A stretch of 64,000 nt of DNA from Phallusia mammillata (lineage: Eukaryota). The notes under the pieces are model-generated. The model saw nothing but the letters and a program-made list of their open reading frames with translations. It ran no database searches and was not told where the DNA came from. A program made the position numbers and the translations under genes. The first letter of the stretch is position 1, and each line of letters opens with the position of its first letter. Where the stretch lies: positions 22,630,001-22,694,000 of the forward strand of contig OZ281495.1 in the NCBI GenBank assembly GCA_965637545.1. Reading direction: 5' to 3'. Below are positions 13,501 to 60,448 of the stretch, piece by piece.

Positions 13501-16500
13501 AAACGAAACATAAACGTAATTCCACCAAGTTTTGCTAGAAACAATTAAAAAAGAAATGTGACAAGACCTAACAAACAGCTAAAAAGTTTGACAAAAGATG
13601 CCAATAAAAATGCCGTTTATTTTCAAGTTTTAATTTTTTTTGGTTTCTGGAAGTTACTTCACTTTATCTTTGTTACTGCGTATATTTACTGCTACATCAA
13701 ACATATTTGTTTTCTTGCAGGTCAGGTGTGGGATGCGTGGAGCGACTGCAGCCAGTCTTGTGGCATCGGGTATCAGACGAGAACCCGTTCTTGTGCAGTG
13801 GGATGTACGGAATACGGCGGGCAGCAATGTCCTCAAGTTGCAGACTGCACGTACGCACGTTAATCAGTAGTTTTAATATTTTACTTGTCCTAATCTGTTG
13901 GATCTTTAGGTGCACTGAGGACCTTTGCGGCAGTTCAGGGTCTTGTTTTGACGTATTGAATGTGTGTGGACAAATTAAGGCCAATGGTGTTTGTACTCTG
14001 CCGGGTTACGTGGCATACCTCACGGCAAATTGTGCAAAAAGCTGCGGTTACTGTACCGACTGCGTTTGTGGTGAGACTTTTGTTGGTAAAATGTTTGGGT
14101 CAAATTTGTAACTATGATCAATATAGCAACTAACAACAACTGCAAAACTTCGTTAACGCTCGACCAAAGTCTGTATCGTACAGTCCAGTAGTATATCTGC
14201 TCTCACAAGTATTTCTCTCTATGCTTGATAGCTTTATAAGCTCAACGTACTCATGTCCAAAAATATTCCGGGTAAAATACATTGTTTGAACTTAACTGGT
14301 CTGGTTACATCGGATGTCCATTATAAACGTCATACAGTCTAATTGGCCTTAATGGTTGAGGATCGTGAAGTCGCGGTCATAAGATTACTAATTCATGGGT
14401 GTATATGAAAGCAACGGGTCGGAAACCAGACTTATTGTTTTTCCATTTCTCAAGTGGTGAATTTAGGGTATTTGTAATCTTTTTCTGTACTTCCAGAGGC
14501 CGCTTGGTCAGAATGGAACTCTTGGACCGCATGCAGCGAAAGTTGTGGTGTGGGCACACGATGGCGCTACAGGGATTGCAACAAAGTCGCAGGTTGCGGT
14601 GACGAATACTTTGAAATTGGTACATGCAACAATGGAGTGTGTCCAGGTAAACAGTTTAGAAATTACAATTGTTTGTTACGCCGTAATGACGTATTCTCAT
14701 ATGTTACCGAACTGTAAAATGTTGCCAGTTTGGACCGATTGGAGTGTGTGGACGTCCTGTGATTGTGCAACCATGAAGCGTTCAAGAAGTCGAGAGTGTT
14801 CCATCGCAAACGCTTGTACCGGTGAAAGTTTGATGACTGAAGACTGCGTTCCTGTTGGTTGTCCAGGTAACTATATGGCATTTTCCGTGACGAAATATGT
14901 GGCTGGATCGTGCCCAGGTTTTTATGTTACAAAATATACGTTTTAAACTGTCTTGTCTATAGTCTTGTTGTATCGCTAAACTTTTGTGGTTATGTTGTCA
15001 GTAGTTCTTTCAGTTACAAGTAAGCGTATACAGTGAAGTCTAATGTATAATCGTTATATCGTCTTACAAAATTGTTTCAATACTTTGCAGCCTGGAGCAA
15101 TTGGGGTCCTTGGGCAACCTGCGACGCGACGTGTGGTGACGGAAAACAGCTTCGAATTCGCACTTGCATTAACGGTCCTGGATGTGTTGGAAAGAAGAGA
15201 AACCGGAAAGATTGCAACTTAAAGCCATGTCCAGGTAATTATTCAATGACTTACAATCTTGTAGAATTGTTTTTGCGTACATTTGTCTAATAACTGCTTT
15301 TTCACGTCGAAATAGTCAAGATTGCTTTAACTCTGAGTTGTTTTACTTCATAAAGCATGGTCGACATGGGGACCGTTCGCAGTAAACCTTGTGGTGGTGA
15401 AATGAGGACGAGATCCAGGTTAAAACTTTGGCTTGATGAGTTTACCTTTTGCAGGTTGGTCGACTTGGGGATCCTGGGGCAGCTGTGACACAACGTGTGG
15501 CCAGGGCGAAAAAAGAAGGACGCGTACTTGTAGTAATGGACCCTGCTCTGGGGCTAGTTTGGATACCATGACTTGCACAGCAGGCGATTGTCCGTGTAAG
15601 TGGATAATGAACACAAAACAATCGTGCTCTTATCGTATAGTCATTTTAAAACGAAAGGGTATTTTAGTTGGAATTTAAGCTCCTTTGGGATTGCAAGTTT
15701 ACGACTTGTCACTTTTCAAAATAAAATATCAAAGTAAAATTCAATTTACCGACACAATACATATAACCTTTTACCTGATTAAGTAACATTTGTTTGCCAA
15801 TTATAGTTTGATATTTAATTTGTGCACAATTTACAATGTCCTCGAAAGTTTATTTGTCATCCAGCTTAAATTCAAGTCAGAATTTTGTTAATATGACGTC
15901 ATCCTGCAAAACCTAAATCTGATCATAACCTATTTAAAACCGTTAAGTAAAATAATGCAATTGTACCAAACATTTGTATAGTCACAAAAACAATTTAAGT
16001 GTCGCCCAAGGCACAAACGTAACCGTCCTGAAAAAAGCTTGGCACGTGACAAATACGTCATTGGATGCCTTCGGGCATGTACGTCACAAAACAACGTCCG
16101 GATCGACGCATGCAATTAATGCGAGACAGTACGGGGAGCTTTGCCTTAAGCGAAATTTTATGTTTTTTATTCAGTTAATATTCACAAAGCTTACAATTTT
16201 TTGGTTTTTGAATTTTGCAAATCACTCTTCGTTACTTTTGACACTTAAACTTTTAGTACAAAAAGGTGCATCTGTGTTTTTAATGTCTGTCTTTCTCACG
16301 CACAAATTAACTTATTTAACCACTGAAAGCAATCAAAAACTTATCTATCAACTTGGTAAAACACAAAATGGAAGTTTATTGTTTTAAGTCGAAAACAAGA
16401 TAACCAACTCGACTTATGTTGTTTGTAATGTGTTATGGTACGCATTTAGCGTGGACAGCATGGACACAGTGGACTGGATGCGACGAAACTTGCGGTGGTG

Positions 16501-25500: not shown

Positions 25501-28446
25501 CATTTTTTGAACATTATCATTATTGTGACTCTTCGTTAAGACTCTTTTAATAGTTGAAGTGTAACGTAACAATTGATCACGCAGCTAATCCCTGGGGACC
25601 TTGCTCTCGAACATGTGGCCAAGGAACAAGGAGCAGACCGAAGTGCGTGGGTTGCGCTTTGGAATACGATGATTGCGAAATTATAAAGTGTCCAACACGT
25701 GAGTCGTATAGCTGCACAGAAAAACCTATAAAGTATTATTAATTTAAAAAAAAACACTAGCCACCTAATAAAATATATATTATTGAACCTATGTTTAGTG
25801 AATTGTGCGGCTAACCACTTCCGCCGTTACTCGGTGAACAATCACACCTGCTGTAGTGGAAACATCGGCTCATGCGGGAGAAGCAGAACCCAGGGGCGAA
25901 TCGTCAACGGCAGGGAAGCAAAAGCTGAGCAGTGGCCGTGGATGGTAAAATTATAACCTAGCTTATCCGTCGATTTTGACTTAAACACGTGGATAAAAGG
26001 GTGCAAGTCAGAAAATAACTGCGGAGCTCTGCTTTAAAAATTTCACAGTGTTGCCCAATTTAGCCCAACTTGGTACTAAATGAAATTTTTTTTTTAAATT
26101 TGAATGAATTTAAGAAACTATTGCCTAAATGTAAGTTTTAAGTTAAGATCAAATTTAAATGATCCAGCAACAATTCAGAAAGTTTATGTCCTTCGGTTTT
26201 TACGACTATATAACTTACTAATCGGTTTTTAAGTACAGCTGATTGAGGTAGTCCTATAGGCCTTTAATTGGGTTTAATTTCCTGCGATGACCATAGTGTT
26301 TATAACAACTGCAACCATTATTACACTTTTATCAGAATTATCGTGGAAACAGTTGGTTGTCTTAACTTTGTAACGTTAACGTCATGGAAATTACAAGCAC
26401 GGGTTAGATGTGCAGTCTTAAAACATTATTTTCTGTTTTTACAGGTGTATATGATTTTCAACAATAACCTTTGTGGAGGAATGGTGATTTCTAATACCTG
26501 GGTATTAAGTGCTGCTCACTGTTTTAGGTATGCTGTTGTAGTTAACTTACGTTTTTTTCTTGCCTTTGTTGTTATATCCCGCACAACACTTACTAACAGT
26601 CTATGTTCTTTCTTAAATCTAATGTGTAAGTTATTTCTTAAAGAGAGCAGACGTTATTTTTTGCTATATTTGTGTATAAAATGTTTTGTAATATATAATG
26701 TTTTTGTTTAGTGGTGTGCAGGCAAGTGCCATCACCGCAACGTTCGGAGCCTTGCTATTTCAGAAAAGCAGCCCCCATCAGCAAACCAGATCGGTGTCTC
26801 AAGTTATCATACACCCACAATACTCATTCCCGAAACATGATGTCGCACTTCTCCGGGTAAGAGACCGCACACAGTCCTACAGCATAAGTTATGTTGTGGT
26901 TGTAGTGCTATCGCAGAATGATACTGATGTGCTTGAAACGGTCTGGTTTTGTTAATATTCAGTTCGTGGAAAATCCAATCAATTTTGGATAACCTCTCTA
27001 CACAGTAAAAATAGGGGTAAGATTATACAGAATAAAAGCATATATAAGTGCTATAAACATTTGGCACATACAATAGTTATAACAGTGCTTGCAAGTACCA
27101 CTTGTAGAAGGTGAGTTACTATGGTTGCTACAGTACCTAATATGTTGAATACCTATTAGGATCGATGACAACTTGCTCATACTTTTCAGCTTTCCAGCGC
27201 AGTAAACTACGGCGCTTACGTACAACCGATTTGTCTTCCCCAAGGAGAAAGGGCGTTGGTTGGTAACATGTGTGTTGCTGCTGGATGGGGAAAACGTATG
27301 TTGAAAAAATGCCACATCTATGTTAAATACCTCAAGTTGGCAAAATATTTACGAGCAGAAAAAAACTCGAAAATAACTTTTTTGTATAAAATCAAAGTTT
27401 GCTCATCTAAAATATGTCGTTTACACTTTCAAACCAAGAAAAGATTTATATGTTATGAAGGCACATTTCGTCTGGGTTTTTGAATTGTTAAACCTTAGTG
27501 GCCAAACAATTGTCGACCACTTGTATATACCCAGTGGTGGGGTTTAAATTTTTGGTCAGCCGGTTCTATCATAAAAGTAATATTTTTCAGCCGGTTCTGT
27601 TACAAAAAGCCCTTTGACAGTAAAAAGTAATGCTAACCGGTTCGCTGATCTCATAAAATTTAGTGAGACTGTTTTATAGAACCGGTGGGAACCGGCTGAA
27701 TCCCACCACTGTATGTACCTCGATCTGATTCATATTATCTTTCATTCAGTGGCAAAGGGCTCTGCACTGCCAAAAACTTTGATGGAAGTAGACTTGAGAA
27801 TTCTTGAACATGTAATATGTTCCAACGCATATCAAACAAAAGCAAACTTTGATGAAAACAGTCACATTTGTGCAGGAGCTGTACGAGGAGGCGTCGACAC
27901 TTGTAACGTAAGTTTAAGACGCACGAACTGCTGTTTTGAATTGACATTTATACATATATTTTGATGGCGGTGTTCAGAGTACAGTAAAACTTGGTTAAAC
28001 CGGATACGGTTATTCCAGGTCTTTACCTAATTCGGAAAAACTACGCAGTACAAATAATCAGTAATATGATAAGACTTGAATTAATCGACATCAATTAATG
28101 CGGACCGGTTCGGGCCAAATAAAATTGTCCGAATTAGGCAGATCCGTATTACTGTTAAATGTATTCAAATTGGCGGAAGTGCGGAAAGACCATAATAAAT
28201 GTTTCTGCGAATAGTAAAAGAAACATACTAAACTTCCTGCATTTCCAGGGCGACAGCGGTGGGCCGCTTATGTGTCAGAGATGTGCAAACTGCGGATGGT
28301 TTGTTGCTGGTATAACTTCGTTCGGGGACCCGAATTGTGGAGGAGCAAAAACGCCTGGCATGTACGCGCGAGTGCGGTCTTATGAAAGTTGGATTCGGAC
28401 TTACACTGGCATAGCTGCCGGAGCCACCCACACTGCATGCCGCTGA
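10563..28446 (+). CDS. Modular serine protease, paralogue 2 (complete, 1457 aa): signal peptide + ShKT + 6 TSP1 + ShK + 12 TSP1 + ShK-like + 3 TSP1 + trypsin (S1A)
   Basis: 31 exons summing to 4374 nt (1458 codons incl. stop): 10563-10635 ([24 protein letters not shown]), 11065-11184 ([35 protein letters not shown]), 11493-11648, 12150-12305, 12501-12650, 12969-13124, 13331-13486, 13721-13850, 13910-14070, 14497-14646, 14729-14866, 15091-15234, 15455-15595, 16450-16590, 17164-17307, 19066-19206, 19790-19933, 20669-20809, 21645-21788, 22355-22498, 23270-23417, 23793-23941, 24743-24892, 25118-25264, 25585-25698, 25799-25944 (R-IVNG), 26445-26527 (SAAHC), 26712-26856 (HDVALL), 27190-27295, 27750-27907, 28249-28446 (GDSGGP). 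Confidence 0.92.
12059..12117 (+). other. Truncated TSP1 pseudo-exon with intact acceptor and in-frame stop
   Basis: caaag|ctgtaaattggtccgaatggggcgattgggaa is a near-identical copy of the start of exon 11493. It diverges after about 38 nt and hits TAA at 12115-12117. Confidence 0.75.
15356..15418 (+). other. Decayed, frameshifted TSP1 pseudo-exon
   Basis: taaag|ca tgg tcg aca tgg gga ccg ttc (AWSTWGPF). After a frameshift it reads agt aaa cct tgt ggt ggt gaa atg agg acg aga tcc ([12 protein letters not shown]), followed by ag|GTTAAA. The entry frame stops at TGA. Confidence 0.6.
16695..16875. mobile_element. Non-autonomous TIR element, family M5
   Basis: TIR ccgagttgtatgt / acatacagctcgg (12/13 match); no clear TSD. 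Confidence 0.65.
16923..17106. mobile_element. hAT-like MITE, family M1 (cagtggtgggattc...gaatcccaccactg)
   Basis: TIRs, exact 8-bp TSD tttacctt, internal aaccgg repeats; 4 copies in the window. Confidence 0.9.
17337..18473. mobile_element. 1.1-kb non-autonomous TIR element (gggaaagtcgtgtaatttggacc ends)
   Basis: 23-bp TIR (22/23 match) and subterminal inverted repeats at 18223-18287. Absent from the duplicated intron copy near 19960. No clear TSD or transposase ORF; superfamily not assigned. Confidence 0.75.
19330..19503. mobile_element. Non-autonomous TIR element, family M5 (duplicate of the 16695 copy)
   Basis: cagagttgtatgt...catacaactcgg at the same intron position in the duplicated unit. 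Confidence 0.65.
19551..19732. mobile_element. hAT-like MITE, family M1 (duplicate of the 16923 copy)
   Basis: Same TIRs and same TSD tttacctt. Confidence 0.9.
22638..23057. mobile_element. hAT-like MITE, family M3 (cagcggttcccaaact...agtttgggaaccgctg)
   Basis: TIRs and exact 8-bp TSD ctctaaag; second copy at 63681. Confidence 0.9.
27532..27711. mobile_element. hAT-like MITE, family M1 (opposite orientation to the 16923 copy)
   Basis: cagtggtgggg...gaatcccaccactg; TSD tatatacc/tatgtacc (7/8). Confidence 0.85.
27980..28155. mobile_element. Degenerate Tc1/mariner-pogo-like MITE fragment (tacagtaaaacttggttaaacc end)
   Basis: Starts with TA-CAGT. Its left end is the reverse complement of 35851-35873 (gggtttaaccaaggtctactgta), and both share ttgtccga(a/g)ttagg. 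Confidence 0.4.
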
Positions 28447-31912: not shown

Positions 31913-32353
31913 TTACTTTTTGGGTGCTAAAGGCTGTCCCTTGTCTTTCCCTCTGAGCTTAATTCCAATTGCTCTTTCAATTTTGCCCAATACTTGGTTG
32001 TTAGGAATTGCTTTTCCATTTTCATATTCATTGATGACTTGAGCTTTTTCGTTGATTTTGGTAGCCAAATCCTTCTGGGTAAGATTCTTCGCCTGTCGGC
32101 CCTTCTGAATCAATCTACCAACATCTAGAGATACCTTGTTATGATGCAGCTCCTCAGTTTCACGGTCAAGTTTAGCTGTATTTTTGCTTGTTACTGCTTT
32201 CTTGTTTGTGCCTGCTGCAAACTTTTGCCTTGTCTCTATATCATCACCACGCCTCAAGGCCGCATTGACAGCCTGACTTGATTTCGCAGCACCAGGTGCA
32301 GGTTTTGACTTACGTAGGTAAGTAACAGTGTCCCAATCAGTATTGCTTTGCAT
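31913..32353 (-). CDS. EDF1: Endothelial differentiation-related factor 1 / multiprotein bridging factor 1 (MBF1), 146 aa, intronless CDS
   Basis: Single ORF with [11 protein letters not shown]-terminus, [21 protein letters not shown], and HTH region [44 protein letters not shown]. Confidence 0.96.
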
Positions 32354-32863
32354 TTCAGCTTTAATAGTTACACCCTAGTAGTAATTCCTGCTAATGTCAC
32401 AAAGCACAGTGATTAAACATAGAACATACATTTAAAAATCAGGTAACAAGGAAAAAAGTAAGTCTGTTTTAGTGTATCATCTGCATTTCAACACAATTAT
32501 TTAATCGAAATCAATAAAAGCAGTCGCTTGAATTAATTACTTTAAATTGCAAATATTGCACACATATTTCTTAAACTGTTGGGTATGCTTAAATGTTACC
32601 ACATAAAAGAGCAGTTACAAGAAAAGGTAACAGATTTATTTGATAATAATGTACTAGACAAGTTACTTGACACCTTTTTATAATTTAGCTGTTCAGTGTT
32701 ACCAGAATCTGGTAGTGGTACACAACAATAAATATGCAAATATAACAATGTACATGACAATATGTATGCATGTATACAAAATAAAACAGAAACTGACACC
32801 ACATTATTGAACCAGTTCTTAACCACCGTTTTTTGATCAATACTTTTTTCCTCGTTAATAAGC

Positions 32864-35215
32864 TCAGTAAGCATAGATGGAAGGAAAATGCAAAGCATCC
32901 AAACCATCATCATCTTCTGTTGTAAAATCCTCTGCTTCCCTAACCTGATTTATCCAGTTTCTTGTGATGACACAGGGATCAGGTGGCCTTTCAGCCATTA
33001 GCTGCTCAAATGGCACACTCTTAATATGTTCTGCAACTTTACTGTTTATTTCAATCTGTTCTTTTCTTGATATTGGCGGCTTGTTCAAAAGCTGCTTAAA
33101 ATATTGGTAAGTAATAGCTTCAACAGGCTTAACACCAACTGCAGTCATTGATGGTGCTTCTTTATTAATAGGAAATTCAATATTGATTGACTCAATATCT
33201 ACTGGCCCACGATGGCCATCTGCACTTACAGTGTCTATTTGATAGCTAGCCAGGGGTTGACTTAGTTTTTCCACGTTAAAACCACCCCTGCCCCTTAAGG
33301 AATCAGATATCAATGTACTAGAGAACACAATCTTTGACAATGAACTAGAATCCAGCAATGTATTGTTCAACCTTTTGCGCCCGGGTGTGAAACTTGGCAT
33401 GATTTGAGGTGCGACAGAGTTTCTTTCCAACATTACTTGGTTGGCATAGTGCTGAAATTCAGGCACAGCTGACAAATGTGCAAGCACCAAAATGCATGCA
33501 GCTGTTGAGGACAAAAGCTGCATTGTTTGTTGATTACTGTCTACCTGAAAGCTTTCTCCGCTGTTTTCCACTACTGAATTTTGAGCAGCTAGAACAATGC
33601 GACACAACTCCAAAATAACATCAGCTGACATAACTGATAAGCACAACACAGACACCAATTTGTACAAAGCTTGAAAATTGTCTGTTGAGTTATCTTCAAG
33701 AGTAAAGCATTCATAAAGCCACAAATATATGCTATGTAGTCTTTGGTCCAAAAATTCACAGTCTTGCTTACTTGCAGTCGATGACACCAAACCAAGTTGG
33801 TCAATATCAGACTCTGAGTTTACCAACTTTAACTTTGTTCTGTTATTATTCTTGTCCAACAAAACAAGTAATACATTTTGTGCAATTAATCTGTCATTTG
33901 GACCAACATTCAGGGTGATTTTAAGTAGAGGCTCTAACAAGCTGGATGATAAAGAAGATAAGGTATTTATTCTGTAAGTCTTTGAAATTTGTTGAATACA
34001 CTGCAACAACAAACTGGAATAGTTCAAGTCAGCAGTTGTTGCTTCTCTTAAATCATGGTCAGATATAGCTTCAAGTGCTCTGTTAATATAAAACGACATC
34101 GCTTCAAGTTTTTGGTAGTCTGGAACCACACTGGACAGAACACCAGTTGTTTCGATTAGAGCAGTTTGAAATGTTTTTTGATTAGTAGATTCTGCTGAAA
34201 TTCTTAGATGTTGTGACAGTCTGTTAAACACATCAATTACAGATGGCCCAATAGCTGTGGATGCTGGAATAGGGACAATTGCGCACAAAACTTTAAGTAT
34301 GCTTGCCCTAATTGGCTGGTCATTATTGTCATGTGTGTCAATGTGATCCAGCAGAAGTTTGACAATTACATGGCTGTATTGACCTTGTATGGAGTACATG
34401 ATGATTTTAAAGGACTTAATGGCAAATGAATTGTCAGGTGCCCAAAGCTCATGATTATCCATGTGCGCTAAAGCAGGATAAATAGCTGCAGAAACATTGG
34501 AGAAAGCTGCTCTTGAAAGTAATTCACGAAGCGATTCTTCAGCTAAGGTTGAAGGTTGTTCAACATCAGAAGCCGCATCTGAAGGATTTTTTTCTTGACT
34601 GTTTTGCATACTGTAAAGCAATGATGGGATAATCTTGTCCATGTGCTGTTTCTCCCATATGTTCACTTGTAACTCATCACTGACTGTTTTGCGTATTACA
34701 CCTCTCAGACCATGAACACCATGAAGCTGTATTTTTCTTCGAATTGAAAGATTTTCTTCGTTGCTGTGGCACATTGCACTAAACTTAGACACAAAAAAGT
34801 CGTATCTTCTATGATATGAAGCAGTGTCTTCTTCAATTTTAGAAAACTTCTCAAATGAGTTTGTTCCAAGTGCTTGAAAATTGTAGTTGTCAGACTCTAA
34901 CAGTGTTGCAACCATTTTTAAAAAGCTTTCAACAAACAAATTTATTTGCTGAGCATGGCATGCCAAAAGTAGTTGATTAAGGGCTTCCATTGCCACAAAC
35001 ACTGATTGGTCTCTTTTCCTTGCAATATCTCTTGTCAATCGCCTAGCAAGATAATCCCCAATCCTGTCCAATTTCTCTGGTGCAGAAACAGCATAGTAGG
35101 TCAACTTTTCCATTTCACTGCGAACCAACCCTTCTGATTGTACTGATGGAAAGATATTGTCCACAAGGCGCTTATACCGCGGCCGAAATGCTGGGCAACA
35201 GGAGCAACTTGCCAT
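32864..35215 (-). CDS. EFR3: EFR3 homolog (plasma-membrane scaffold of the PI4KA complex), 783 aa, intronless CDS
   Basis: Start placed at MASCSCCPAFRPRYKRLVDNIFP (Cys-cluster palmitoylation N-terminus; ATG at 35215). Continues EMEKLTYYAVSAPEKLDRIGDYL, LLLACHAQQINLFVESFLKMV and YHRRYDFFVSKF; ends FPSIYAY, similar to the EFR3 C-terminal tail. Confidence 0.95.
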   Translation of the reverse strand: MASCSCCPAFRPRYKRLVDNIFPSVQSEGLVRSEMEKLTYYAVSAPEKLDRIGDYLARRLTRDIARKRDQSVFVAMEALNQLLLACHAQQINLFVESFLKMVATLLESDNYNFQALGTNSFEKFSKIEEDTASYHRRYDFFVSKFSAMCHSNEENLSIRRKIQLHGVHGLRGVIRKTVSDELQVNIWEKQHMDKIIPSLLYSMQNSQEKNPSDAASDVEQPSTLAEESLRELLSRAAFSNVSAAIYPALAHMDNHELWAPDNSFAIKSFKIIMYSIQGQYSHVIVKLLLDHIDTHDNNDQPIRASILKVLCAIVPIPASTAIGPSVIDVFNRLSQHLRISAESTNQKTFQTALIETTGVLSSVVPDYQKLEAMSFYINRALEAISDHDLREATTADLNYSSLLLQCIQQISKTYRINTLSSLSSSLLEPLLKITLNVGPNDRLIAQNVLLVLLDKNNNRTKLKLVNSESDIDQLGLVSSTASKQDCEFLDQRLHSIYLWLYECFTLEDNSTDNFQALYKLVSVLCLSVMSADVILELCRIVLAAQNSVVENSGESFQVDSNQQTMQLLSSTAACILVLAHLSAVPEFQHYANQVMLERNSVAPQIMPSFTPGRKRLNNTLLDSSSLSKIVFSSTLISDSLRGRGGFNVEKLSQPLASYQIDTVSADGHRGPVDIESINIEFPINKEAPSMTAVGVKPVEAITYQYFKQLLNKPPISRKEQIEINSKVAEHIKSVPFEQLMAERPPDPCVITRNWINQVREAEDFTTEDDDGLDALHFPSIYAY

Positions 35216-35539
35216 GTTTAACGAAAATATCACAACTTCATTAACATACACATGGATGCTGCAATAATGTAACATCTGGCGGTTTACACATAAAACTAAC
35301 ACATGTTTATGCAATTTAATGTGTTAAATAATTAGCACACATTCAAAGGTTTTGATTGCATACATAATGTTGTGTTTGCATAAAAATGTACATGTATGAC
35401 AACACATGTATGTCACACAAAAATATAGCATGCATATTAAACACAAGTTTTTTAAATGTGGCTGGCTTGTTGTTTTTAAATACAGTAAACATTAATACTT
35501 ACTAATACAAACCCGCTGTACCAAAAAAAATGTTCAGAT

Positions 35540-51215: not shown

Positions 51216-52631
51216 TCAGTCAAAAGCTTGTCTCATCATTTCGATAAGATTAACTTCATCAGAGAGATGCACATGAGCCCTATTCATGGCTCTTTCCGTG
51301 TCCCTGATGTACTTTTGACGCTTGGCTTCTGATTCAAAATCGTCTGCTTGTTTAAAGCAGTCAATCGCCTCTGCATAGGTACCAGCTGCCTTTTCGGGCT
51401 CAGACATTCGCATGTAACTTGAGCCCAGGTTATTTAGGAGCGTGCCGAAAATCTGAAACTTCATAGACTTGTTTCCAAACGTGTTGCGCATCAGCTGTAT
51501 TCCTTCGTTCAAAACCTCTGCACTCGACTGTACATCCTGGTCGCATACCTCGATATAGTGCACAATCCAGGCCGCTTTTACGCACTTAAACTGATCTTCT
51601 ACTCCATCGAAACTAAGTACCTTGTCCTTCATTGACCTCATAAGCGGAAGGACGTAGGTTTGCACAAATGACTTCATGCTTTCGTCGTCCTTCATTATAC
51701 CAAGCACCGGCTCACGCATGGACGACATGCACTTGTCAATCACAGAAATGGTTTTCTTGTTGTTGTTAGGATCAGAGTACATCTCAATTGTCACCAAGCA
51801 AAACAATATTGCCTCAAACTCCTGCCCTTTGGAATGCAGCATCTCAATAAATGAAACAGCACTGTGGACGCTCATATGGACATTTTCGTTGAGGGCGTTA
51901 ATGAGCTCCTTCCTCACCTCGGTACAACGTTTCATACGACCAGTGGCAAGTAGGGTCACTCCATATTTTAAAAGAAACCTTAAGTTGCGCAGCACACTGC
52001 CCAACAAGGACTGCCGGTTGAGAATTCCAAATGCAGCGTCGTATTTACCCTCGTTTAGCAATGCTACACTGGTTTCTATAAAACGAAACACCATAATTAG
52101 CGTTCGTAGCAGACGTATTTTGAATCGTCTATCCACATACCTACACTTCAGTTTCGAAATACACGAAATACAGCACAGACAACGCTAGCAGTGTAAATAA
52201 AACATGCACACAGCTAATAAAACAATACAAATACTTGCCTTCCCAGTCAGACAAAAACACCTGAGAGAGCTTTAATTTCCTCTTGTAGCTTGTGGTCTGC
52301 CGACCTAAAAACGCGGATGTACAGGATAATGCAAGTAAACTAAAGCAAGCAAAATTCTTAATTACAAAAAGAAATAAACTTATACAGCACAAAATACGTC
52401 CTAGTTGAATAAACCCTTGTGGTGGCCGTTTCTAAAAAGCTAAGTCTGTACACCAAATAATTTTAGTCACCTACCTCTTGGCGGATCATTTAATACACTT
52501 TGTTGCTGGCTTGTAGATGGCTCGTCTACAATGGGGTTTTCAGTTTCTGGCACCAAGTCTGCAACGTATATAAGGTAACAAAAGCAAACTTGAACACGCA
52601 CACTTGACTTACCAGCAGCAACATCCGCCAT
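51216..52631 (-). CDS. Unnamed alpha-helical TPR-like protein, paralogue A (314 aa)
   Basis: Exons 52631-52613 (MADVAA, GTAAGT donor), 52304-52239 (GRQTTSYKRKLKLSQVFLSDWE, GC donor) and 52075-51216. All joins are phase 1; sum 945 nt. C-terminal FGTLLNNLGSSY..EKAAGTYAEAIDCFKQADDFE. Confidence 0.8.
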
Positions 52632-53532
52632 TTTTGCTTGCTAACCCGATGCAGGTCGTATTGGTGCTTTCTATAACGTTGGCTGCTATTATTTTCCACA
52701 ATCAAGGCAAAGTATCACGGCACTACTGATGGGTTAAGCATTGGTTCCGCTTTTCTGTACTTTCAACGTCAACCACACGTAACACCAAAATGAGGAACCA
52801 CTGTACAGCAGCCTCTCTCGAAACCTTACACAAGTACAAACAATGAACGCTTTGTTGAATTGCATGCTACACTGGTCTGGTACGGGCATTGCAGCTTAGC
52901 TTGGCTAATAGAAACTGTAACTTTTGTGTACATATCAAATTGCTACTTTGGACTGGGTGCGGATTTTCTGTGCCGTTATACGCTGACATACGCGCTATTT
53001 GCTTTTTGTGGTGTTTTGTTTTTGATTTCATTGGTTTAAAAATAAAGATTAACAGCTGTATAGCCGTTTTTTTACGTGTTTTTTTCTCAACTTTGATATA
53101 GATAATTGCTGTACAGCTTTAATTGTTTAGAATTGTAGGTTTTTGTGTCAATTTTGTTATGGTAAATTTGAATCGTTTTTTGGCCCTCATAGCTATGAAA
53201 CAGTTTGTTAGATAAAAAAATATCAATGTTTTTTGAAGTGCACAGTCTCAACGCTTCACTGGTGTCGTAAAACAAATCAATTTAATGTGTACATACATCC
53301 CAACGGTAAGCACAACAACTACAGCAATTCGTAGGCACTATAGGAATAAAACAATGCAATGCAATAAAAAAATATTTACACTCTCTTTATAAGACTGGAA
53401 TAAAGAGTATACATACATAAATTTAAAATATACGATAAACGTTTGGTCTACTACATTTACGCAAACTTATACGAAGCAAACAACCTTGTTCAATCAATAC
53501 AGATTTATAAAATACATCATCATAGGAAAGGG

Positions 53533-54518
53533 TTAATTTTTGCGCAGTGCTAGGGACAAAGCTCCTTCTGCATCCATTATAAACTTTTCTTTCTTTGCAT
53601 CACTTTCGAAATCTTTTGCATGATGAAAAGCATCGATGGCCCTAGCAAAACAGTCAGCAGCCTGCTCGTATTCAGAGAGGACCAAATATGTGGCTCCCAA
53701 GTTATTCAGGTAGGTGCCGTACATCTGGATATGCGCTGCATTATTGCCGTAGATCTTATCCATGTTGTCGATGGCTTCAAGCAAGGTCTTCTCTCGTGTG
53801 TCGTGGTCCTCGACTTCCAGCTCCACGCACTCCACCACGTGATAGCACACAGATCGAATGAGAAGCAAAAGCTTATCTCCAGCATGTTGGGTGCATTTGA
53901 TGACCTTGCCGTTTATGGCATGCAGCATCGGTGCCACCGTCAGTTCGCCGAACGCTTTGTGAGACGGGTCAGCCTTGATTAACTCGGTGACACACTCGCG
54001 GATGATGTGCATGCAATTAAGTAATGAGGCGGCAGAGGTACCAGAAGGAGGTTCAACATCTAACAGCGACGCTGCTAGGTTTGCAACTGCGATGGCGTGT
54101 AAATATTTCTTCATCTCCTGAAGCTTGAGGGCAAACTTTAGTGCCTCGTCACCTGTGGTTCTTAGCGATTTGCGAACTAAGTTGAAAAGTTTGTCGAAGA
54201 CTTCCTTCGCTTCTTCGTGACGCTGGGTCACAATGAGGCTTTCGTAGTATTTAATGAGAAACGGCAGATCGCGCACTTCGTCTTCTTGCTCGTAGATTCG
54301 ATCAAGAATCCCAAACGCCTCGTCAAAATTGTTTTCTTTCATTAGTTGTGTAGTTCGATCTGTGCAAACAAACTATCAATTTTATATTTGCGAATGCTTC
54401 AAAGTATTTTCGAAAATGTTTTGTTTTTTGGCACTTATAAGAATATCAACTGTATCCAAACTTATACCATGTTCAGGTTACCTTCGAGGTCGAAGAATCG
54501 CTCAAGATTGCTTTTCAT
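53533..54518 (-). CDS. Unnamed alpha-helical TPR-like protein, paralogue B (>=287 aa)
   Basis: Exons 54518-54482 (MKSNLERFFDLE) and 54359-53533. The small exon is open upstream to an acceptor at 54577, so the N-terminus may be longer. YGTYLNNLGATY..EQAADCFARAIDAFHHAKDFE motif. Confidence 0.8.
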
Positions 54519-56106
54519 GGCGGCTTGTTTAGGCTTCCTTCCTGTAGCTTGACTTTTCTTATTTGTCTTCTCCGTCTCTGGCAATATATATGTAACAAAT
54601 ACATGAAAATACGATAAAACATTATTCCAAACTAATTCAAAAAACACATGCTAATACCTGTTGTTTCTCCCAACCCCGCAAATGTTGCACCTTCTCCAGG
54701 AAATACCCTTTGCATGTAATGAGACAGACTTTCTGTTCAAAACAATGAAACACTTACGATAATATCACACATGTCAACGTACACAAGCAAATTGATAAAG
54801 CATACCGACGTTTTGTGCCAACATTCCATACACAGTGCTGCAAAGAATATGAGATTTTATTATTGTGTGTTTTCGACATACGACAAGGTTTCAACTGACC
54901 GATGATCTGGTTTGTGTTGAACGTTGACGTTGAGATTTAAATTCATTCTGTCGTCGTCAGTTGTGACATTGGTTTGATGCATTGTTCTCTTTTTAATTCT
55001 TTACCAAATGAAAATATAAGTGCAACACAAGCTGCAACCAAAGTTGTTGTTGTTATATGGCAAACGACTGCAACCTTTTTCGAATAACGTGTACACAACG
55101 TGTGTGTACCCTAGATGCGAAGCCAAAATATATCGACCTTATTAAGCCACAGGCTAGATTCTAAAAAAACAAAGATTGGCTTTAAATTTACCAAGTATCG
55201 CAAAATAAAACTCGAATTATTGCCATTTGATTTGCTGATAACATATAAGACCGGGCAACAAAAATACTATTCGAGCGCTCTGTTTGACCCGTAGTCCGAC
55301 AAGTTACACATCCCCACGTTGAAGGATGCGTAATACCGAGCTTTTGACTAAAGCTGTTCTGTCAAGCAAAGTAGTAGCTTGCTTATAAGGTAACACAAAA
55401 CGACTATTGAACCACGTAATAAAGCAGCTACACAAACGATGTACGGCTTGTCGATTTCACTTCCCCTTTTTAACGGTTGAATGGTTCTGATTGTGTTACG
55501 ATCACGTGATTTTAATTTATGGCCAGTACCAATAGTTAATGCCGTCATATTATCAAACAACATGGCTTTAACTGTCTGTACAAATAATTTTATTATTTAA
55601 GCAGAAACTTCTTCATATTTCCAAAACATAAAAAAGTTAATCCAAGAAAGAAATGTTTACACCACATTCATTTTTTGAACTAATTATTTTTGGTTATTGG
55701 CTTCTGTCGCGTTTTGCCGCTTTTGTCCGTTTATATGGCGTAATCCGAGTGAAAGATGTGTTAAGTAGTCATTTGTTTTTGCCTAATACGTGAAATTCTT
55801 GACGATGACAGACTGTGTGTATATAAGAACTGACCAGAGGCGAAGAGCGACCTTTAGCGACAAATAAAAAAATATCAAAATTCAGGTTTCAAATTTGATC
55901 ATCTGAAAACTCTCCTTATTAAATAATAAAACTTACTGATAACAATAGTTAATTTATCGTGAAACCTGAATATTAGCTTCAAACAGCTTGCTTTTTCAAC
56001 CCTAGCTTAAAAAGGTAAATAATATTGGCATCACGTGTAAGAAAAGTAAACATTGAGAACATAACATAGCACAGGTCTCTTTGTAAACTTTATTCACAGC
56101 TTAAGC

Positions 56107-56320
56107 CAGTGATTCTCAAACCCGGCTTTCAGAGCCGCTTGCGGCTCCCAACTACTTATTTTGCGGCTCCCACCAGACATCAGAAAACCATCGAACATTG
56201 CTGTTTTAGCTTTCAAAATAATAATCTTTAGTGTTCTCTTAAAGTTTCGTTTTTTTGCGGCCCTCCACACCTAAAAAACTGCCATTTGGTCCCGACAATA
56301 AAAAAGTTTGAGAACCACCG
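56107..56320. mobile_element. hAT-like MITE, family M4
   Basis: Homologous to 35540-35747; TSD gcttaagc/gcttaagt (7/8). Confidence 0.85.
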
Positions 56321-56572
56321 GCTTAAGTGGTTGCCTGTCTTTTTACAAGTAATGGTACAGTTTTCTACCAGGTGATTACATTCGCTGAAGTTTTGCTGGC
56401 AATTAGCAAGTGTTTGTTTCGATGTATTTAAATAGTCATCGGTCACACAAAACTGACCTAATGGACGAGATATTTACAGAACACTTTATTGCATCGGTTT
56501 TGCTTCTGACAGTATCACAAGATGTACATAAAGATTTAATAATACACAGAAACAAATGACATTTTTTTAGTA

Positions 56573-57963
56573 TTAAAATCCTTCCGCTGTATTTAAAGCC
56601 TCATTCGCTGCTTTAAGGTATTTGTTTTTCTTGTCATCCGTTTCAAAATCTGTGGCTAAATTAAAGCATTTAAGAGCCTCTTGCAGATATTTTACAGCAT
56701 TTTCTCTCGAACCAAGGCGCCTGTGTATTGCACCGATGTTAAGACACAGTGTACCGAAAATTTGATGTTTATATACTTGGTCCCCAAGTGTCTCTCGCAT
56801 AGAGTTTAGTGTGTCCGAAATAAGCTGACGTCGCTCGTTATTGTTGGACTCGCAGACTTCAATGCCATGTGTAACCCAAGCAGTTTTGACACACTTATAT
56901 TGTGGGTTGATGCCGTCCAACTCTACTAGAGATTGTTTCATCGCATACATGTTCGGGAGTATGCGACGGCGTACAAATAAGTCCAAATTTTTCTCACTTT
57001 CTACCATTTTTGAAACAGGATTTTTTATGCCCGATATGCAATCTTCTAGTAGCGTGCTTGCCTGGGTCGGCTTACTTCGGTCAAAAAACATGTCAAAGCA
57101 AATCTCATACACAATTATGGAAGCAAAAAGTCTGTTCTTTTTTGCAAGTTCTTGAGCCAGCCACAAAACTGCTGGGCTAGTTGAGTTTAACTTAAAAAAC
57201 AACAATTTGAGTTGCTCCTTAACTTGAGAGTAATCCCGGTTAGTCGACATTAGACTGACACAGCTGTCAAGAAGATAAGGAGCGTTTCTTAACTCTGCAT
57301 CCATTTTATATCTTCCATCCATAACACCAAAAGCTTCCCAGAATTGACCAGTTGCAAAATACGCCAAAGAAGGATCTGTAATTTATGACCACATCACATT
57401 ATTTACTCCTTATAAAAATTGTTTATTTTTATAGTTGTTTGTGTTTGAGTGCTCATGTTTATTCCGCAAAGTCTAATATATACTTTCCAGAAATGGCTTA
57501 CCTGTCCACAGAAAAACTTGCTCAAGGTCAAATTTTGAAGCTTGTTTAAGATTTTGTTCTCTACCTACAATAGAAAAAAACATTTTGTTTTTGTCAACAC
57601 CTAGTACGTTGTTGGCGACTTGGATATAATGTGACACCAACTTATAAAAGATATAACTTACTCCTAACCATTGGCAAATTTCACAAAAACGCAGGGGGGC
57701 AGATGTGAAACAAATCTCATCCAACTTTGACAACACTAATGTTTGCAGCAACTACAGGAAACGCAAACTCAAGTGCCAACATTTATATGCAGAAGTCTAT
57801 TGTTGTTCGTTTTATAACGTTTTTTGTTGGCGTACAGGCCAGACGTGGATATTACAGTGGTTATCAAATATGACCATTATTGGGTCAGGAAAAGAGCTTC
57901 CTTCGAAGTTATAATGGGAATCCACTTACCAAGGATTTCAGTCTCTGATTCTTCATTTTCCAT
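56573..57963 (-). CDS. Unnamed alpha-helical TPR-like protein, paralogue C (299 aa)
   Basis: Exons 57963-57930 (MENEESETEIL), 57564-57502 (GREQNLKQASKFDLEQVFLWT) and 57375-56573. Phase-1 joins; sum 900 nt. FGTLCLNIGAIH..ENAVKYLQEALKCFNLATDFE motif. AATAAA on minus at 56490-56485. Confidence 0.8.
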
Positions 57964-58879
57964 TGTTTCTATTTCTTCTCGGGCTTGTTGTCTGATTCCA
58001 GTAATTGTCAAATCTACAGTACAATGTATTGCCCAATTAATAAAACAACTGTGTTTGCAACAAGTTATGCTATAATTAGTAAATATTGTAGTAAATGTAC
58101 CTCGAAAATCCATTGCGCTTTATCAAAAGATATCCAACTCATGTGGCAGACAATATTTGAACAACGAAATCTTCTCTGTCGCAACAATGTAAAGTTTACA
58201 TTGTAAACTTTCAAAGATTAACCCATGCAAGTACCATGACGACCTTTTTACAAGCATTAAACCTCGTAGGTAAACACAGCTTTTGCAATCTCATTTGTTC
58301 AAACAGATTAGGATCATTGTACACCAAGCTGTTTTTTTGTTTTTTTTTGCTGGTTTGACTGCAACGTTTGTCTTTGGACAGTATCAGTTTATATTTGATC
58401 CATGTGTTTCCAACCTTTGACTTCAGCAAGTTTGTTAAATGTGAATTTATCCATCAAAAAACGCATATAACTGCTGCCGAAGGTCGGGAATAACACTGGA
58501 ATGAACAGATCAGTAGTTAACCACTTCCACGTCAACGCGTAAGTGAAATGTTTTTGTTCATTCAGTAGGAATCTGTAATGTTTTAGAGCAAAATACCTGT
58601 AAAAACGACAGTTTAATTTCTTGGACATACTTACCTGAATATAAGTAACCAACAACTCATTAATTGGAAATAAAAAGAGTTTCGCTAAACTTTGAGTAAA
58701 ATACAACTGTGTTATTACAGGCAAAACGTGGTTTTAAATGTGAACGAAGGAGGTATGTTTCTGTAGACTTGTTTTAACACTTATATCACCAAGTACAGTG
58801 GCATTTATTTACTTACAGACGAATACTTTTGTAATGTTAACCCGGAAAAAAGAGAAGAAGAAACCAATGGAGGTGAAAT

Positions 58880-58933
58880 GATGTGTTTTGTTGAACAGAA
58901 CGATGACTTCACGATGTGTTTTGTTGAACAGAA
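58880..58933 (+). repeat. Short direct duplication gatgtgttttgttgaacagaa x2
   Basis: Units at about 58880 and 58913. Confidence 0.75.
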
Positions 58934-59224
58934 ACGACGTTGATTTTCATAGTGCTTTTTAATTATATACAACTTATAGCAACTACCCGACTTATTCCAT
59001 ACTGCGCTTTATTAGTAATGTTTTGTGGCACTTTTGGGACATCTAGCGTACAAATATTTTTACAACTAAAATACCAGGCCTGACGGTGACATTATGTAAA
59101 AAAAAACGAATTTACGGCTTTGACAGAAAACTTTAAAAGAGTCATGAAGGTTGTTTAATTCAAAGCAATATTAAAAAGGTCAATGCATAATTTTTTTGCT
59201 GTGAACTTTCTGAATTCTTTGCAG

Positions 59225-60448
59225 AACCTGGAACGTCCACAGGCACAGAAAAGGCTAAAGGTACGTTGTTGGATATCGTTTCCAAATTTCTAATACAATA
59301 AGTGTTATGTGTCCTCTATGTAAGAAAATTTAAAAGTGATCACTATTCTGGGTATCGCTAGTGTTCAATCTTGTTTTTTGGTATTAAAGTGCTATTTTCA
59401 CAATTAAAACCACGATGACAATAATAATTCTCACATTACCAGATTTTTTTCGCAGAAGTAAAAACTTCTCAACGCCAGATGGTGTGGCAGACCGACCTAC
59501 ATCGGATATTAAAATACGAGGGTAAGATTTTCCCCAAAAAATTACACACAAAAGATATAAAAATAAAATGAGTCATGTATTTTTATAATTGTAAGCATAT
59601 TTTGTCATGCAGAAGAGATTGCGGATTTGCATGACCGCGGGGATCTTTATCAGGAGTTCAGACATGACTGGGTGAAAGACTACGATCCGTCTCAAAGAGA
59701 AATAGGATTTTTAATGCGTTATTGCCTCAGTCTGATGTTAACGAACCACGAGAGCCAAGCAAATGATATTTTTGATGAAATATTGATTTTGATTCAAAAC
59801 TTGAGTGAAACATTTCTTAGCGTGTTGTCCCTTGCCGAAAAGTACACAGCTGACGATTTTATCACCATGATGCTGGGTCTGATTGCTGCCAAAATGGCTG
59901 ACTTAGACAACAACACCTTTGGTGATGGTATTGAAAAGCTGAAGTGTATGCAAGTTGTTAGAGAAGCTGCTGGAAGTATTTCAAAGCACACACCACCAGC
60001 CAAGCCTTTTCTTAGGCGATTCTGTGTTAAGGCCGTTCGTCCTTTGTTTGAGAACATACAACAAATCGCCTCCAGAGTTGACATACGCAATAATCTTATC
60101 AGATTGAAGATATCCGCCTTTCACAGCTTGGAGATTCTGCTGCTCTACGCAGATGACGACATTGAGAGAGCAAAAGTGCTTGAAAGGGCACTGGACTTTA
60201 TGAAAGAGACTTACAAAGATGAGGTCCACCTGAGAAAGTGGTTCGGCAACTTTTCTCATAACCTTGGCATCACTTACACCAACTTGGGACGACACGGTGA
60301 AGCGGCTACAGTTTTGTTACAAGCCCTCAACACGTTCCAACTAGCAATCGACTTTGATGACAAAAATGAACAACTCCAAGATGTGACCAGGTCGAGAAAT
60401 ATGTTGAGCGTTCCCAGTCTGGGGGGTCTTGTGATAATAGATGATTAG
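59225..60448 (+). CDS. Unnamed alpha-helical TPR-like protein, paralogue D (start codon uncertain)
   Basis: Phase-1 exons 59225-59260 (PGTSTGTEKAK), 59456-59521 (VKTSQRQMVWQTDLHRILKYE) and 59613-60448, plus a further candidate exon at 58819-58872. Possible ATG at 59479. FGNFSHNLGITY..GEAATVLLQALNTFQLAIDFD motif. AATAAA at 60565-60570. Confidence 0.75.

Follow-up and report, generated by a model that had tools for sequence, protein, structure and literature searches.

Four head-less members of an ascidian TPR-like domain family in Phallusia mammillata, candidate adaptors of a RIPK-linked signaling family

The stretch of DNA analyzed here (hereafter, the window) comprises 64,000 nucleotides of the ascidian Phallusia mammillata (GenBank assembly GCA_965637545.1, contig OZ281495.1, positions 22,630,001 to 22,694,000 of the forward strand). 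Between window positions 51216 and 60448 it carries four intact paralogous genes, designated A, B, C, and D, each of which encodes a domain predicted to fold as an alpha-solenoid resembling tetratricopeptide repeats (TPRs). The domain family to which these genes belong is without a named member, tandemly expanded, and apparently lineage-restricted. In other branches of the family, the same domain lies downstream of kinase ORFs (open reading frames) related to RIPK1, or forms the predicted cytoplasmic tail of a membrane receptor. We propose, at about even chances, that A–D are the head-less subunits, adaptors or regulators, of a signaling family that is ascidian-specific and RIPK-linked.

A preliminary description, made from the letters of the window only, had placed four intact paralogous ORFs in this region, and they lie exactly where it put them (Table 1). 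The four proteins can be aligned over their whole length, with identities to A of 33, 30, and 21 per cent for B, C, and D, respectively, and of 24 per cent between B and D. The range across the four genes (21–33 per cent) agrees with the earlier by-eye figure of between a quarter and a third, the shared motifs listed at that time are all present in our alignments and models, and each gene indeed ends in one large exon of 803–860 nt. The protein sizes given then (~290–315 aa) had to be revised (Table 1), as B and D proved to start with additional 5′ exons. The micro-exons upstream of the big exon had been described as phase-1. This holds for all internal ones, which are symmetric (phase 1-1; 84 and 66 nt in A, 75 and 96 nt in B, 63 nt in C, and 54, 36, and 66 nt in D), but not for exon 1 of B and D: these two genes start alike and unusually, in that exon 1 leaves off in phase 2 and a second exon of 32 nt brings the frame back to phase 1.

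The models of A, B, and C are based on splice signals and homology, with AG acceptors and GT or GC donors joined in frame. The penultimate exon of A is conserved in a contig of another ascidian (L036; E-value 3e-4), where the homologous exon ends at the same place with GTAAGT, supporting the GC donor in the model of gene A. The peptide encoded by the penultimate exon of C is conserved upstream of two paralogs (L005 and L009), and the motif of this exon, L-x-(Q/R)-hydrophobic-(F/L), is also kept in relatives from Ciona and Clavelina and in a contig of another ascidian. The full-length proteins are acidic (isoelectric point [pI] 5.2–5.6, net charge −4 to −15), as are three of the four big-exon domains (pI up to 5.9); the domain of C has a pI of 7.7. 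Because no signal peptide or transmembrane segment is visible by eye and the maximum hydropathy is only 0.9–1.7, the products of A–D are taken to be cytosolic.

Gene D is transcribed and spliced as modeled. Four RNA-like runs of one study (X1–X4) were mapped on positions 54300–60299, which hold the 5′ part of B, gene C, and gene D up to within its big exon. Spliced contigs cross five GT..AG joints of D with 0 mismatches and exactly at the predicted exon borders; the first three joints were recovered from every one of the four runs, the last two from X1 and X2 alone.

The big-exon domain is confidently predicted to be a TPR-like alpha-solenoid of ~260–280 aa with 12 paired helices. Specifically, the AlphaFold2 model of the D big exon, obtained with an alignment of 24 big-exon domains, has 12 helices, a mean predicted local distance difference test score (pLDDT) of 90.1, and a predicted template modeling score of 0.85. 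The domain really starts in the penultimate exon, since the conserved motif encoded there falls on a short helix predicted to cap the solenoid in the AlphaFold2 model of a Ciona relative (P0043). Database, family, and fold searches used the big exons as queries; the joined spliced proteins were compared only locally and on a small scale. The top Foldseek matches were Pins/LGN, kinesin light chain (KLC), NASP, and BtubC (E-values ~1e-3, template modeling [TM] scores 0.3–0.5). A second fold search that is independent of Foldseek (VIA-align) ranked NASP best (Z 13.8); TPR, 14-3-3, SNAP, and PlcR-type solenoids come next in an unbroken series (Z 10–13) in which nothing stands out. The leading matches (Pins/LGN, KLC, NASP, BtubC, 14-3-3, and PlcR; Z 11–14) are without exception TPR-like.

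A canonical TPR signature, as judged by sequence profiles, is confined to the last one or two hairpins. Pfam returns one sub-threshold TPR per window protein (residues ~207–237), and the last hairpin matches TPR_1, TPR_2, TPR_8, TPR_10, and TPR_12 with E-values of 1e-3 to 7e-5, below the Pfam gathering scores. Similarly, the family profile reaches proteins of the PDB only through positions ~172–240 (consensus TPR, 8e-56; OGT; KLC1, 2.7e-8). The KLC-type signature recognized in the preliminary description, G-x-x-L-N-N-L-G...A...A, is therefore genuinely shared with kinesin light chain and LGN/Pins (Pfam TPR_12 type) in the last one or two hairpins. However, it does not extend to the rest of the domain: the other ten helices of A–D are without a detectable TPR sequence signature, and the folds match those proteins at TM scores of only 0.3–0.5. 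The ESM Atlas yielded only generic TPR clusters, with a recognition score below the useful range.

A profile built from the window genes and 20 genome paralogs detects at least 139 copies of the domain in the 240-Mb genome. Eight copies are clustered at 22.68–22.72 Mb of the contig that contains the window (C2), namely A–D and four genes located just past the window end; 74 more copies lie at 0.7–7.3 Mb of the same contig, 30 are on contig C1, and the others are scattered. A family match at C1:23110896-23111576 (+ strand) is situated inside a stop-free open frame of 867 aa; here the domain may have been fused, within one exon, to a larger protein.

An exhaustive profile search of 1.84 billion representative proteins gave hundreds of matches of two kinds: generic multi-TPR proteins, which are matched by their last repeat only, and proteins of 250–500 aa that contain the whole domain in one stretch. 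Among the latter, all named matches are ascidian (Ciona intestinalis, Phallusia mammillata, Clavelina lepadiformis, and Styela clava), with E-values of 1e-40 to 1e-88 for single-stretch full-length matches in these four genera. One Ciona protein (P0001) has three full-length copies of the domain (7e-220 summed). The named relatives are labeled as uncharacterized or, automatically, as 'tetratricopeptide repeat protein'; the other full-domain matches are unnamed metagenome or Logan proteins. Among named hits, the family therefore appears to be restricted to ascidians. The preliminary description had proposed a lineage-restricted, tandemly expanded, TPR-like cytosolic family without a named member, as opposed to single-copy genes conserved across phyla, and the copy number and the all-ascidian list of named full-length hits support this. 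A word-indexed protein search returned nothing with B and a single unrelated multi-TPR protein with the family alignment; given the hundreds of matches of the exhaustive search, we attribute this blank to the index of the tool and not to a lack of relatives. Literature searches (tunicate RHIM, Ciona RIPK/necroptosis, ascidian TPR expansion, and LOC identifiers) retrieved no description of the family.

Outside Phallusia, five short-form family proteins of Clavelina lepadiformis fall within one accession run (CAK8689375–CAK8689380), a pattern suggesting that head-less genes also stand in tandem in a second ascidian order. Synteny in another ascidian was uninformative, with one family gene per locus of 12–17 kb.

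Members of other branches of the family carry additional domains in front of the solenoid. At one locus (L029), a 327-aa kinase ORF (Pfam Pkinase, 9e-30) precedes the same-strand family exon by ~200 nt; the best solved relatives of this ORF are RIPK1 (3.6e-23) and then RIPK4, RIPK3, RIPK2, and IRAK4. At a second locus (L013), a kinase C-lobe is placed in the same way upstream of the family exon. The profile matches to kinase-linked loci have E-values of 1e-20 to 1e-36. In two transcript-derived Phallusia proteins (P0006, CAB3260946.1; P0151, CAB3263339.1), a Cys-rich segment with many N-glycosylation sites and a hydrophobic helix of 23 residues precede the domain; both are predicted to be single-pass receptors in which the domain would form the cytoplasmic tail. 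On the tree, the two proteins fall inside a clade of loci at 1.1–3.8 Mb of C2.

The window genes and the kinase-linked genes have in common the domain itself, the single big 3′ exon, and linkers encoded by phase-1 micro-exons. Unlike their kinase-linked relatives, A–D have no kinase, death-fold, or transmembrane head and form a separate old clade; we call them head-less because they carry only a short leader where other branches carry a RIPK1-like kinase or a transmembrane receptor. The wide spread of short forms such as A–D, which occur throughout the tree and in all four named genera, indicates that the head-less architecture is probably old.

In a quick maximum-likelihood tree of 85 domains, each window gene has its own, well-supported nearest relatives (Table 1). 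Three of these relatives (P0010, P0011, and P0005) are metagenome or Logan proteins, which we take to be from another ascidian because they belong to the domain family. Synonymous divergence (dS) among A–D is saturated, and estimates of the ratio of nonsynonymous to synonymous substitution rates (dN/dS, or omega) among the four genes themselves were rejected as unusable. Omega is 0.21–0.26 for the paralogs L006 and L008 (dS 0.72–0.87), 0.35 for L005 and L009, and ~0.2 for D compared with L006 or L008. By these estimates, the window cluster is under net purifying selection, and A–D are separate old lineages of moderately constrained paralogs. The earlier label 'rapidly diverged' is accordingly not supported for this cluster, given the saturated dS, a relative elsewhere for each gene, and omega of 0.2–0.35. 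Elsewhere in the family, the dN/dS comparison that had been suggested as a check gives a different answer: in contrast to the constraint on the cluster (0.21–0.35), young duplicates in kinase-linked branches have omega of 0.55–1.06 at dS of 0.12–0.35, which points to relaxed or diversifying selection there. These high-omega duplicates are L013, L029, and L030 (C1, ~33.9–35.9 Mb) and L016–L023 (C2, 1.1–3.8 Mb).

The cluster is also organized in pairs. A gene of the C clade and a gene of the D side stand head to head at four places: C/D, L005(−)/L006(+), L009(−)/L008(+), and L011(−, D-side)/L007(+, C-side). Since this pairing recurs, the cluster would have grown largely by copying of a two-gene unit, and duplication probably acted on an ancient pair of genes. 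Within the C/D pair, the four runs gave RNA contigs for D only. The big exon of L006 is 95 per cent identical to that of a transcript-derived P. mammillata protein (P0004, CAB3261007.1). The micro-exons upstream of L006 (L031:4829-5843, + strand) are only 60–85 per cent identical to P0004; this leader seems to evolve faster than the big exon or to be alternatively assembled.

In front of the solenoid, A–D have an acidic leader of 30–95 aa encoded by the symmetric phase-1 micro-exons. The leaders look disordered, as do those predicted for short forms in Ciona, Clavelina, and Styela, and in Ciona P0043 residues 1–68 have a pLDDT of ~33. A motif of alternating aliphatic and N or Q residues is found in the first ~25 residues of P0043, of three Clavelina proteins (P0074, P0067, and P0125), and of one Styela protein (P0113). 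It is closely similar between P0043 and P0074, and B and D begin with similar strings. With a hidden Markov model (HMM) of this motif, derived from the N-terminal sequences of relatives in Ciona, Clavelina, and Styela, the leader of B scores 5.7 bits, a score that one of 500 shuffles of the same leader reaches. The score of the D leader is not significant (reached by 227 of 500 shuffles), A and C are without the N/Q/V-rich motif, and a six-frame scan of the family loci for it was no better than a reversed-sequence control. The motif in B and D is thus a suggestive lead only. A candidate exon for it upstream of a B-like gene in another ascidian had no in-frame start and an E-value of 1.1 and was not counted, and an ab initio listing of first exons for neighboring paralogs was too noisy for use.

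The B- and D-type leaders resemble RHIM and HET-s motifs in that a short, beta-prone N/Q/aliphatic motif lies at a disordered N-terminus in a family that includes RIPK-related proteins. Nevertheless, we reject RHIM membership of A–D: the RHIM core tetrad, (I/V)-Q-(I/V/L/C)-G, which is part of a motif of ~18 residues, is absent from their leaders, and no Pfam RHIM or amyloid-motif model matched any of nine full-length family members at E ≤10, although HMMER filters can drop very weak matches. An L-Q-V-G tetrad occurs in Phallusia P0004 and, with a flank that differs by one residue, in the micro-exon of L006. According to Kajava et al. (2014), tunicates seem to lack RHIMs. At the other end of the proteins, the C-terminal tails are subfamily-specific: the tail of A is kept in P0010, and the short tail of B is kept in P0011. 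By sequence, they are possible short linear motifs. Tails are Gly/Leu-rich in the D type (D, L006, L008, and L010), Gly/Ile-rich in the C-type neighbors (L005, L009, and P0005), and amphipathic in A.

The remaining features of the window are unrelated to the domain family. The repeat between B and C (Table 1), which resembles a short interspersed nuclear element (SINE) or a miniature inverted-repeat transposable element (MITE), attracts many deep, mismatched contigs in all four runs that continue into unrelated sequence. Intron 3 of gene D contains a ~20-nt direct repeat, present twice and ~30 nt apart, at 58880–58940. Other, unrelated genes in the window are at 31913–35314 (−), 26268–26711 (+), and 13707–14111 (+), and comprise an EFR3 homolog (816-aa ORF, Pfam 8e-40), an MBF1/EDF1 homolog, a trypsin-like exon, and an ShK-domain exon.

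Table 1. Features of the A–D locus (window coordinates unless a contig is given), with nearest relatives of the window genes in the tree of 85 domains.
Feature	Position	Strand	Basis	Details	Nearest relatives (identity; support)
Gene A ORF	51216-52136	-	Open reading frame		
Gene B ORF	53533-54342	-	Open reading frame		
Gene C ORF	56573-57367	-	Open reading frame		
Gene D ORF	59627-60448	+	Open reading frame		
Gene A, 342 aa	51216..52631	-	Splice signals and homology, open joined frame	4 coding exons: 52631-52613, 52558-52475, 52304-52239 (GC donor), 52075-51216 (big exon, 860 nt)	P0010 (50%; 99)
Gene B, 370 aa	53533..54982	-	Splice signals and homology, open joined frame	5 coding exons: 54982-54900 (phase-2 end), 54837-54806, 54732-54658, 54577-54482, 54359-53533 (big exon, 827 nt)	P0011 (46%; 99)
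Gene C, 299 aa	56573..57963	-	Splice signals and homology	3 coding exons (open joined frame): 57963-57930, 57564-57502, 57375-56573 (big exon, 803 nt)	P0005, L005, L009 (up to 52%; 96)
Gene D, 353 aa	58403..60448	+	RNA joints, open joined frame	6 coding exons: 58403 or earlier to 58538 (ATG at 58501), 58721-58752, 58819-58872, 59225-59260, 59456-59521, 59613-60448 (big exon, 836 nt)	L006/P0004 and L008 (50%; 99)
N/Q/V-rich, beta-strand-like N-terminal motif (suggestive) in first coding exon of B	54900..54982	-	HMM score		
Interspersed high-copy repeat, SINE- or MITE-like, between B and C, outside genes	56100..56320		Deep mismatched RNA contigs		
Divergent intergenic region between C (-) and D (+)	57964..58402			~440 bp, from C start codon to first RNA-supported base of D	
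Head-to-head pair C/D	56573-60448				
Head-to-head pair L005/L006	C2:22695687-22701190				
Head-to-head pair L009/L008	C2:22706508-22718098				
Head-to-head pair L011/L007	C7:698653-702005				

As head-less adaptor or regulator subunits, A–D would act in the cytosol through their solenoid, which would dock on a partner or peptide common to the domain family, and through short motifs at both ends of the protein, in the leader and in the C-terminal tail, which would recruit other components or compete for them; A–D could possibly serve as decoys. Elsewhere in the family, RIPK1-like kinase ORFs directly precede the exon for this domain, which makes a context of immunity or cell death plausible. 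A functional analogy may be drawn to CARD-only and PYD-only proteins, cFLIP, and MyD88s, the domain-only regulators of death-fold and TIR signaling: there, too, small paralogs keep the docking domain without the effector head and have their genes beside or among those of full-length members. The fold of A–D is unrelated to those of these regulators, however, and the head-less form of A–D occurs widely and is probably of old origin rather than recently derived.

Several observations weigh against this proposal. The signaling link is guilt by association with paralogs that are only 15–20 per cent identical to A–D. Between close pairs, identity changes little from one helix to the next (0.42–0.64), without a hypervariable helix, a conserved patch, or a variable groove, and AlphaFold2 left the leader of full-length Ciona P0043 unstructured and undocked on its solenoid. 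No second family member was found within 6–10 kb of a B-like gene in the contig of another ascidian, and the cluster layout is not obviously conserved in that animal. Finally, the four runs gave no RNA contigs on C or on the mapped part of B (54300–54982, which spans the small 5′ exons and reaches into the big exon).

That description had instead likened the cluster to the vertebrate IFIT genes, in which case A–D would be sensor-effectors whose solenoid recognizes a foreign ligand, such as viral RNA, and whose tandem copies diversify after pathogens. We consider this unlikely. IFITs are ~450–490 aa long, contain some nine TPRs and a basic RNA pocket, and are encoded by two exons, the first of which holds hardly anything besides the start codon. 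What A–D share with them is real, namely tandem cytosolic genes of a lineage-specific, expanded, TPR-like family, with the repeats all in one large 3′ exon. Yet A–D have 4, 5, 3, and 6 coding exons, respectively, in place of the two of an IFIT-type gene, a shorter solenoid (~270 aa, 12 helices), and an acidic composition. IFIT homology was rejected: IFITs are missing from the 60 best sequence matches in the PDB, from the Foldseek matches shown, and from the 50 best VIA-align matches. Nor does the mode of evolution fit an arms race in the cluster, whose lineages are ancient, constrained (omega 0.21–0.35), and evenly diverged across helices. Parts of the family may nonetheless diversify, as the omega of the young kinase-linked duplicates would allow, and one Ciona member has a weak, sub-threshold Pfam match to the TPR-S 'sensor' model (E-value 0.007). 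Overall, the analogy is superficial.

The N-terminal motif raises another alternative, in which A–D are amyloid-type signaling adaptors, the N/Q/V-rich motif of B and D is a templating motif like those of RHIM or HET-s proteins, and the solenoid controls its exposure. Its presence in the first ~25 residues of members from three other genera, the score of the B leader (above that of 499 of 500 shuffles), the predicted disorder of the leaders, and the RIPK-like kinases of the family are in its favor. The statistical failure of the D leader, the lack of the motif in A and C and of the RHIM tetrad in all four genes, the Pfam result, and the six-frame scan make it improbable, and no motif-bearing partner was found. 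The best structural matches, to NASP (Z 13.8), BtubC, LGN/Pins, 14-3-3, and the TPR domains of Sti1, are what would be expected of incidentally duplicated housekeeping scaffolds or co-chaperones (NASP-, SNAP-, 14-3-3-, or Sti1-like), and so are net purifying selection and the expression of D in all four runs. However, these matches are at the level of any helical repeat, with none standing out, and named hits in ascidians only, at least 139 copies, and kinase or receptor heads are atypical of housekeeping chaperones; we accordingly think this explanation improbable as well. Determinants of self/non-self recognition (allorecognition) or of gamete recognition are very improbable, and none of our observations speaks specifically for such roles or for that of a sensor. 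Such a role would suit a lineage-specific tandem family of an ascidian, and L006 and P0004 differ at ~5 per cent of big-exon residues and at more in the micro-exons, but this may be a difference between species or alleles, and A–D are cytosolic, judged by eye to be without a signal peptide or transmembrane segment, and under purifying selection.

Our preferred reading of A–D as head-less, RIPK-linked subunits can be extended to a bolder one, in which ascidians, reported to lack RHIMs, would have replaced the RHIM and death-fold wiring of RIPK signaling by a system of their own: the solenoid would be the common docking module of kinases, receptors, death-fold adaptors, and head-less proteins, the N/Q/V-rich motif of the B and D type an amyloid-like or beta-augmentation trigger, and the C/D pairs a two-component unit. 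We regard this extension as a long shot.

Ascidians are the closest invertebrate relatives of vertebrates, yet their intracellular circuitry for innate immunity and cell death is in large part uncharted. Taken alone, the window is more modest in what it offers: its genes are ordinary-looking, constrained paralogs with no sign of an arms race. What it newly contributes is an old head-less clade, the organization in gene pairs, proof from RNA for D, and the contrast in selection with the kinase-linked branches. Being small, presumably soluble, and confidently folded, and with one of them expressed, A–D are the simplest members of the family for binding studies. With at least 139 copies, recombined with RIPK-like kinases, with a membrane receptor, and into head-less forms, the domain is a strong candidate to underlie a lineage-specific signaling network.

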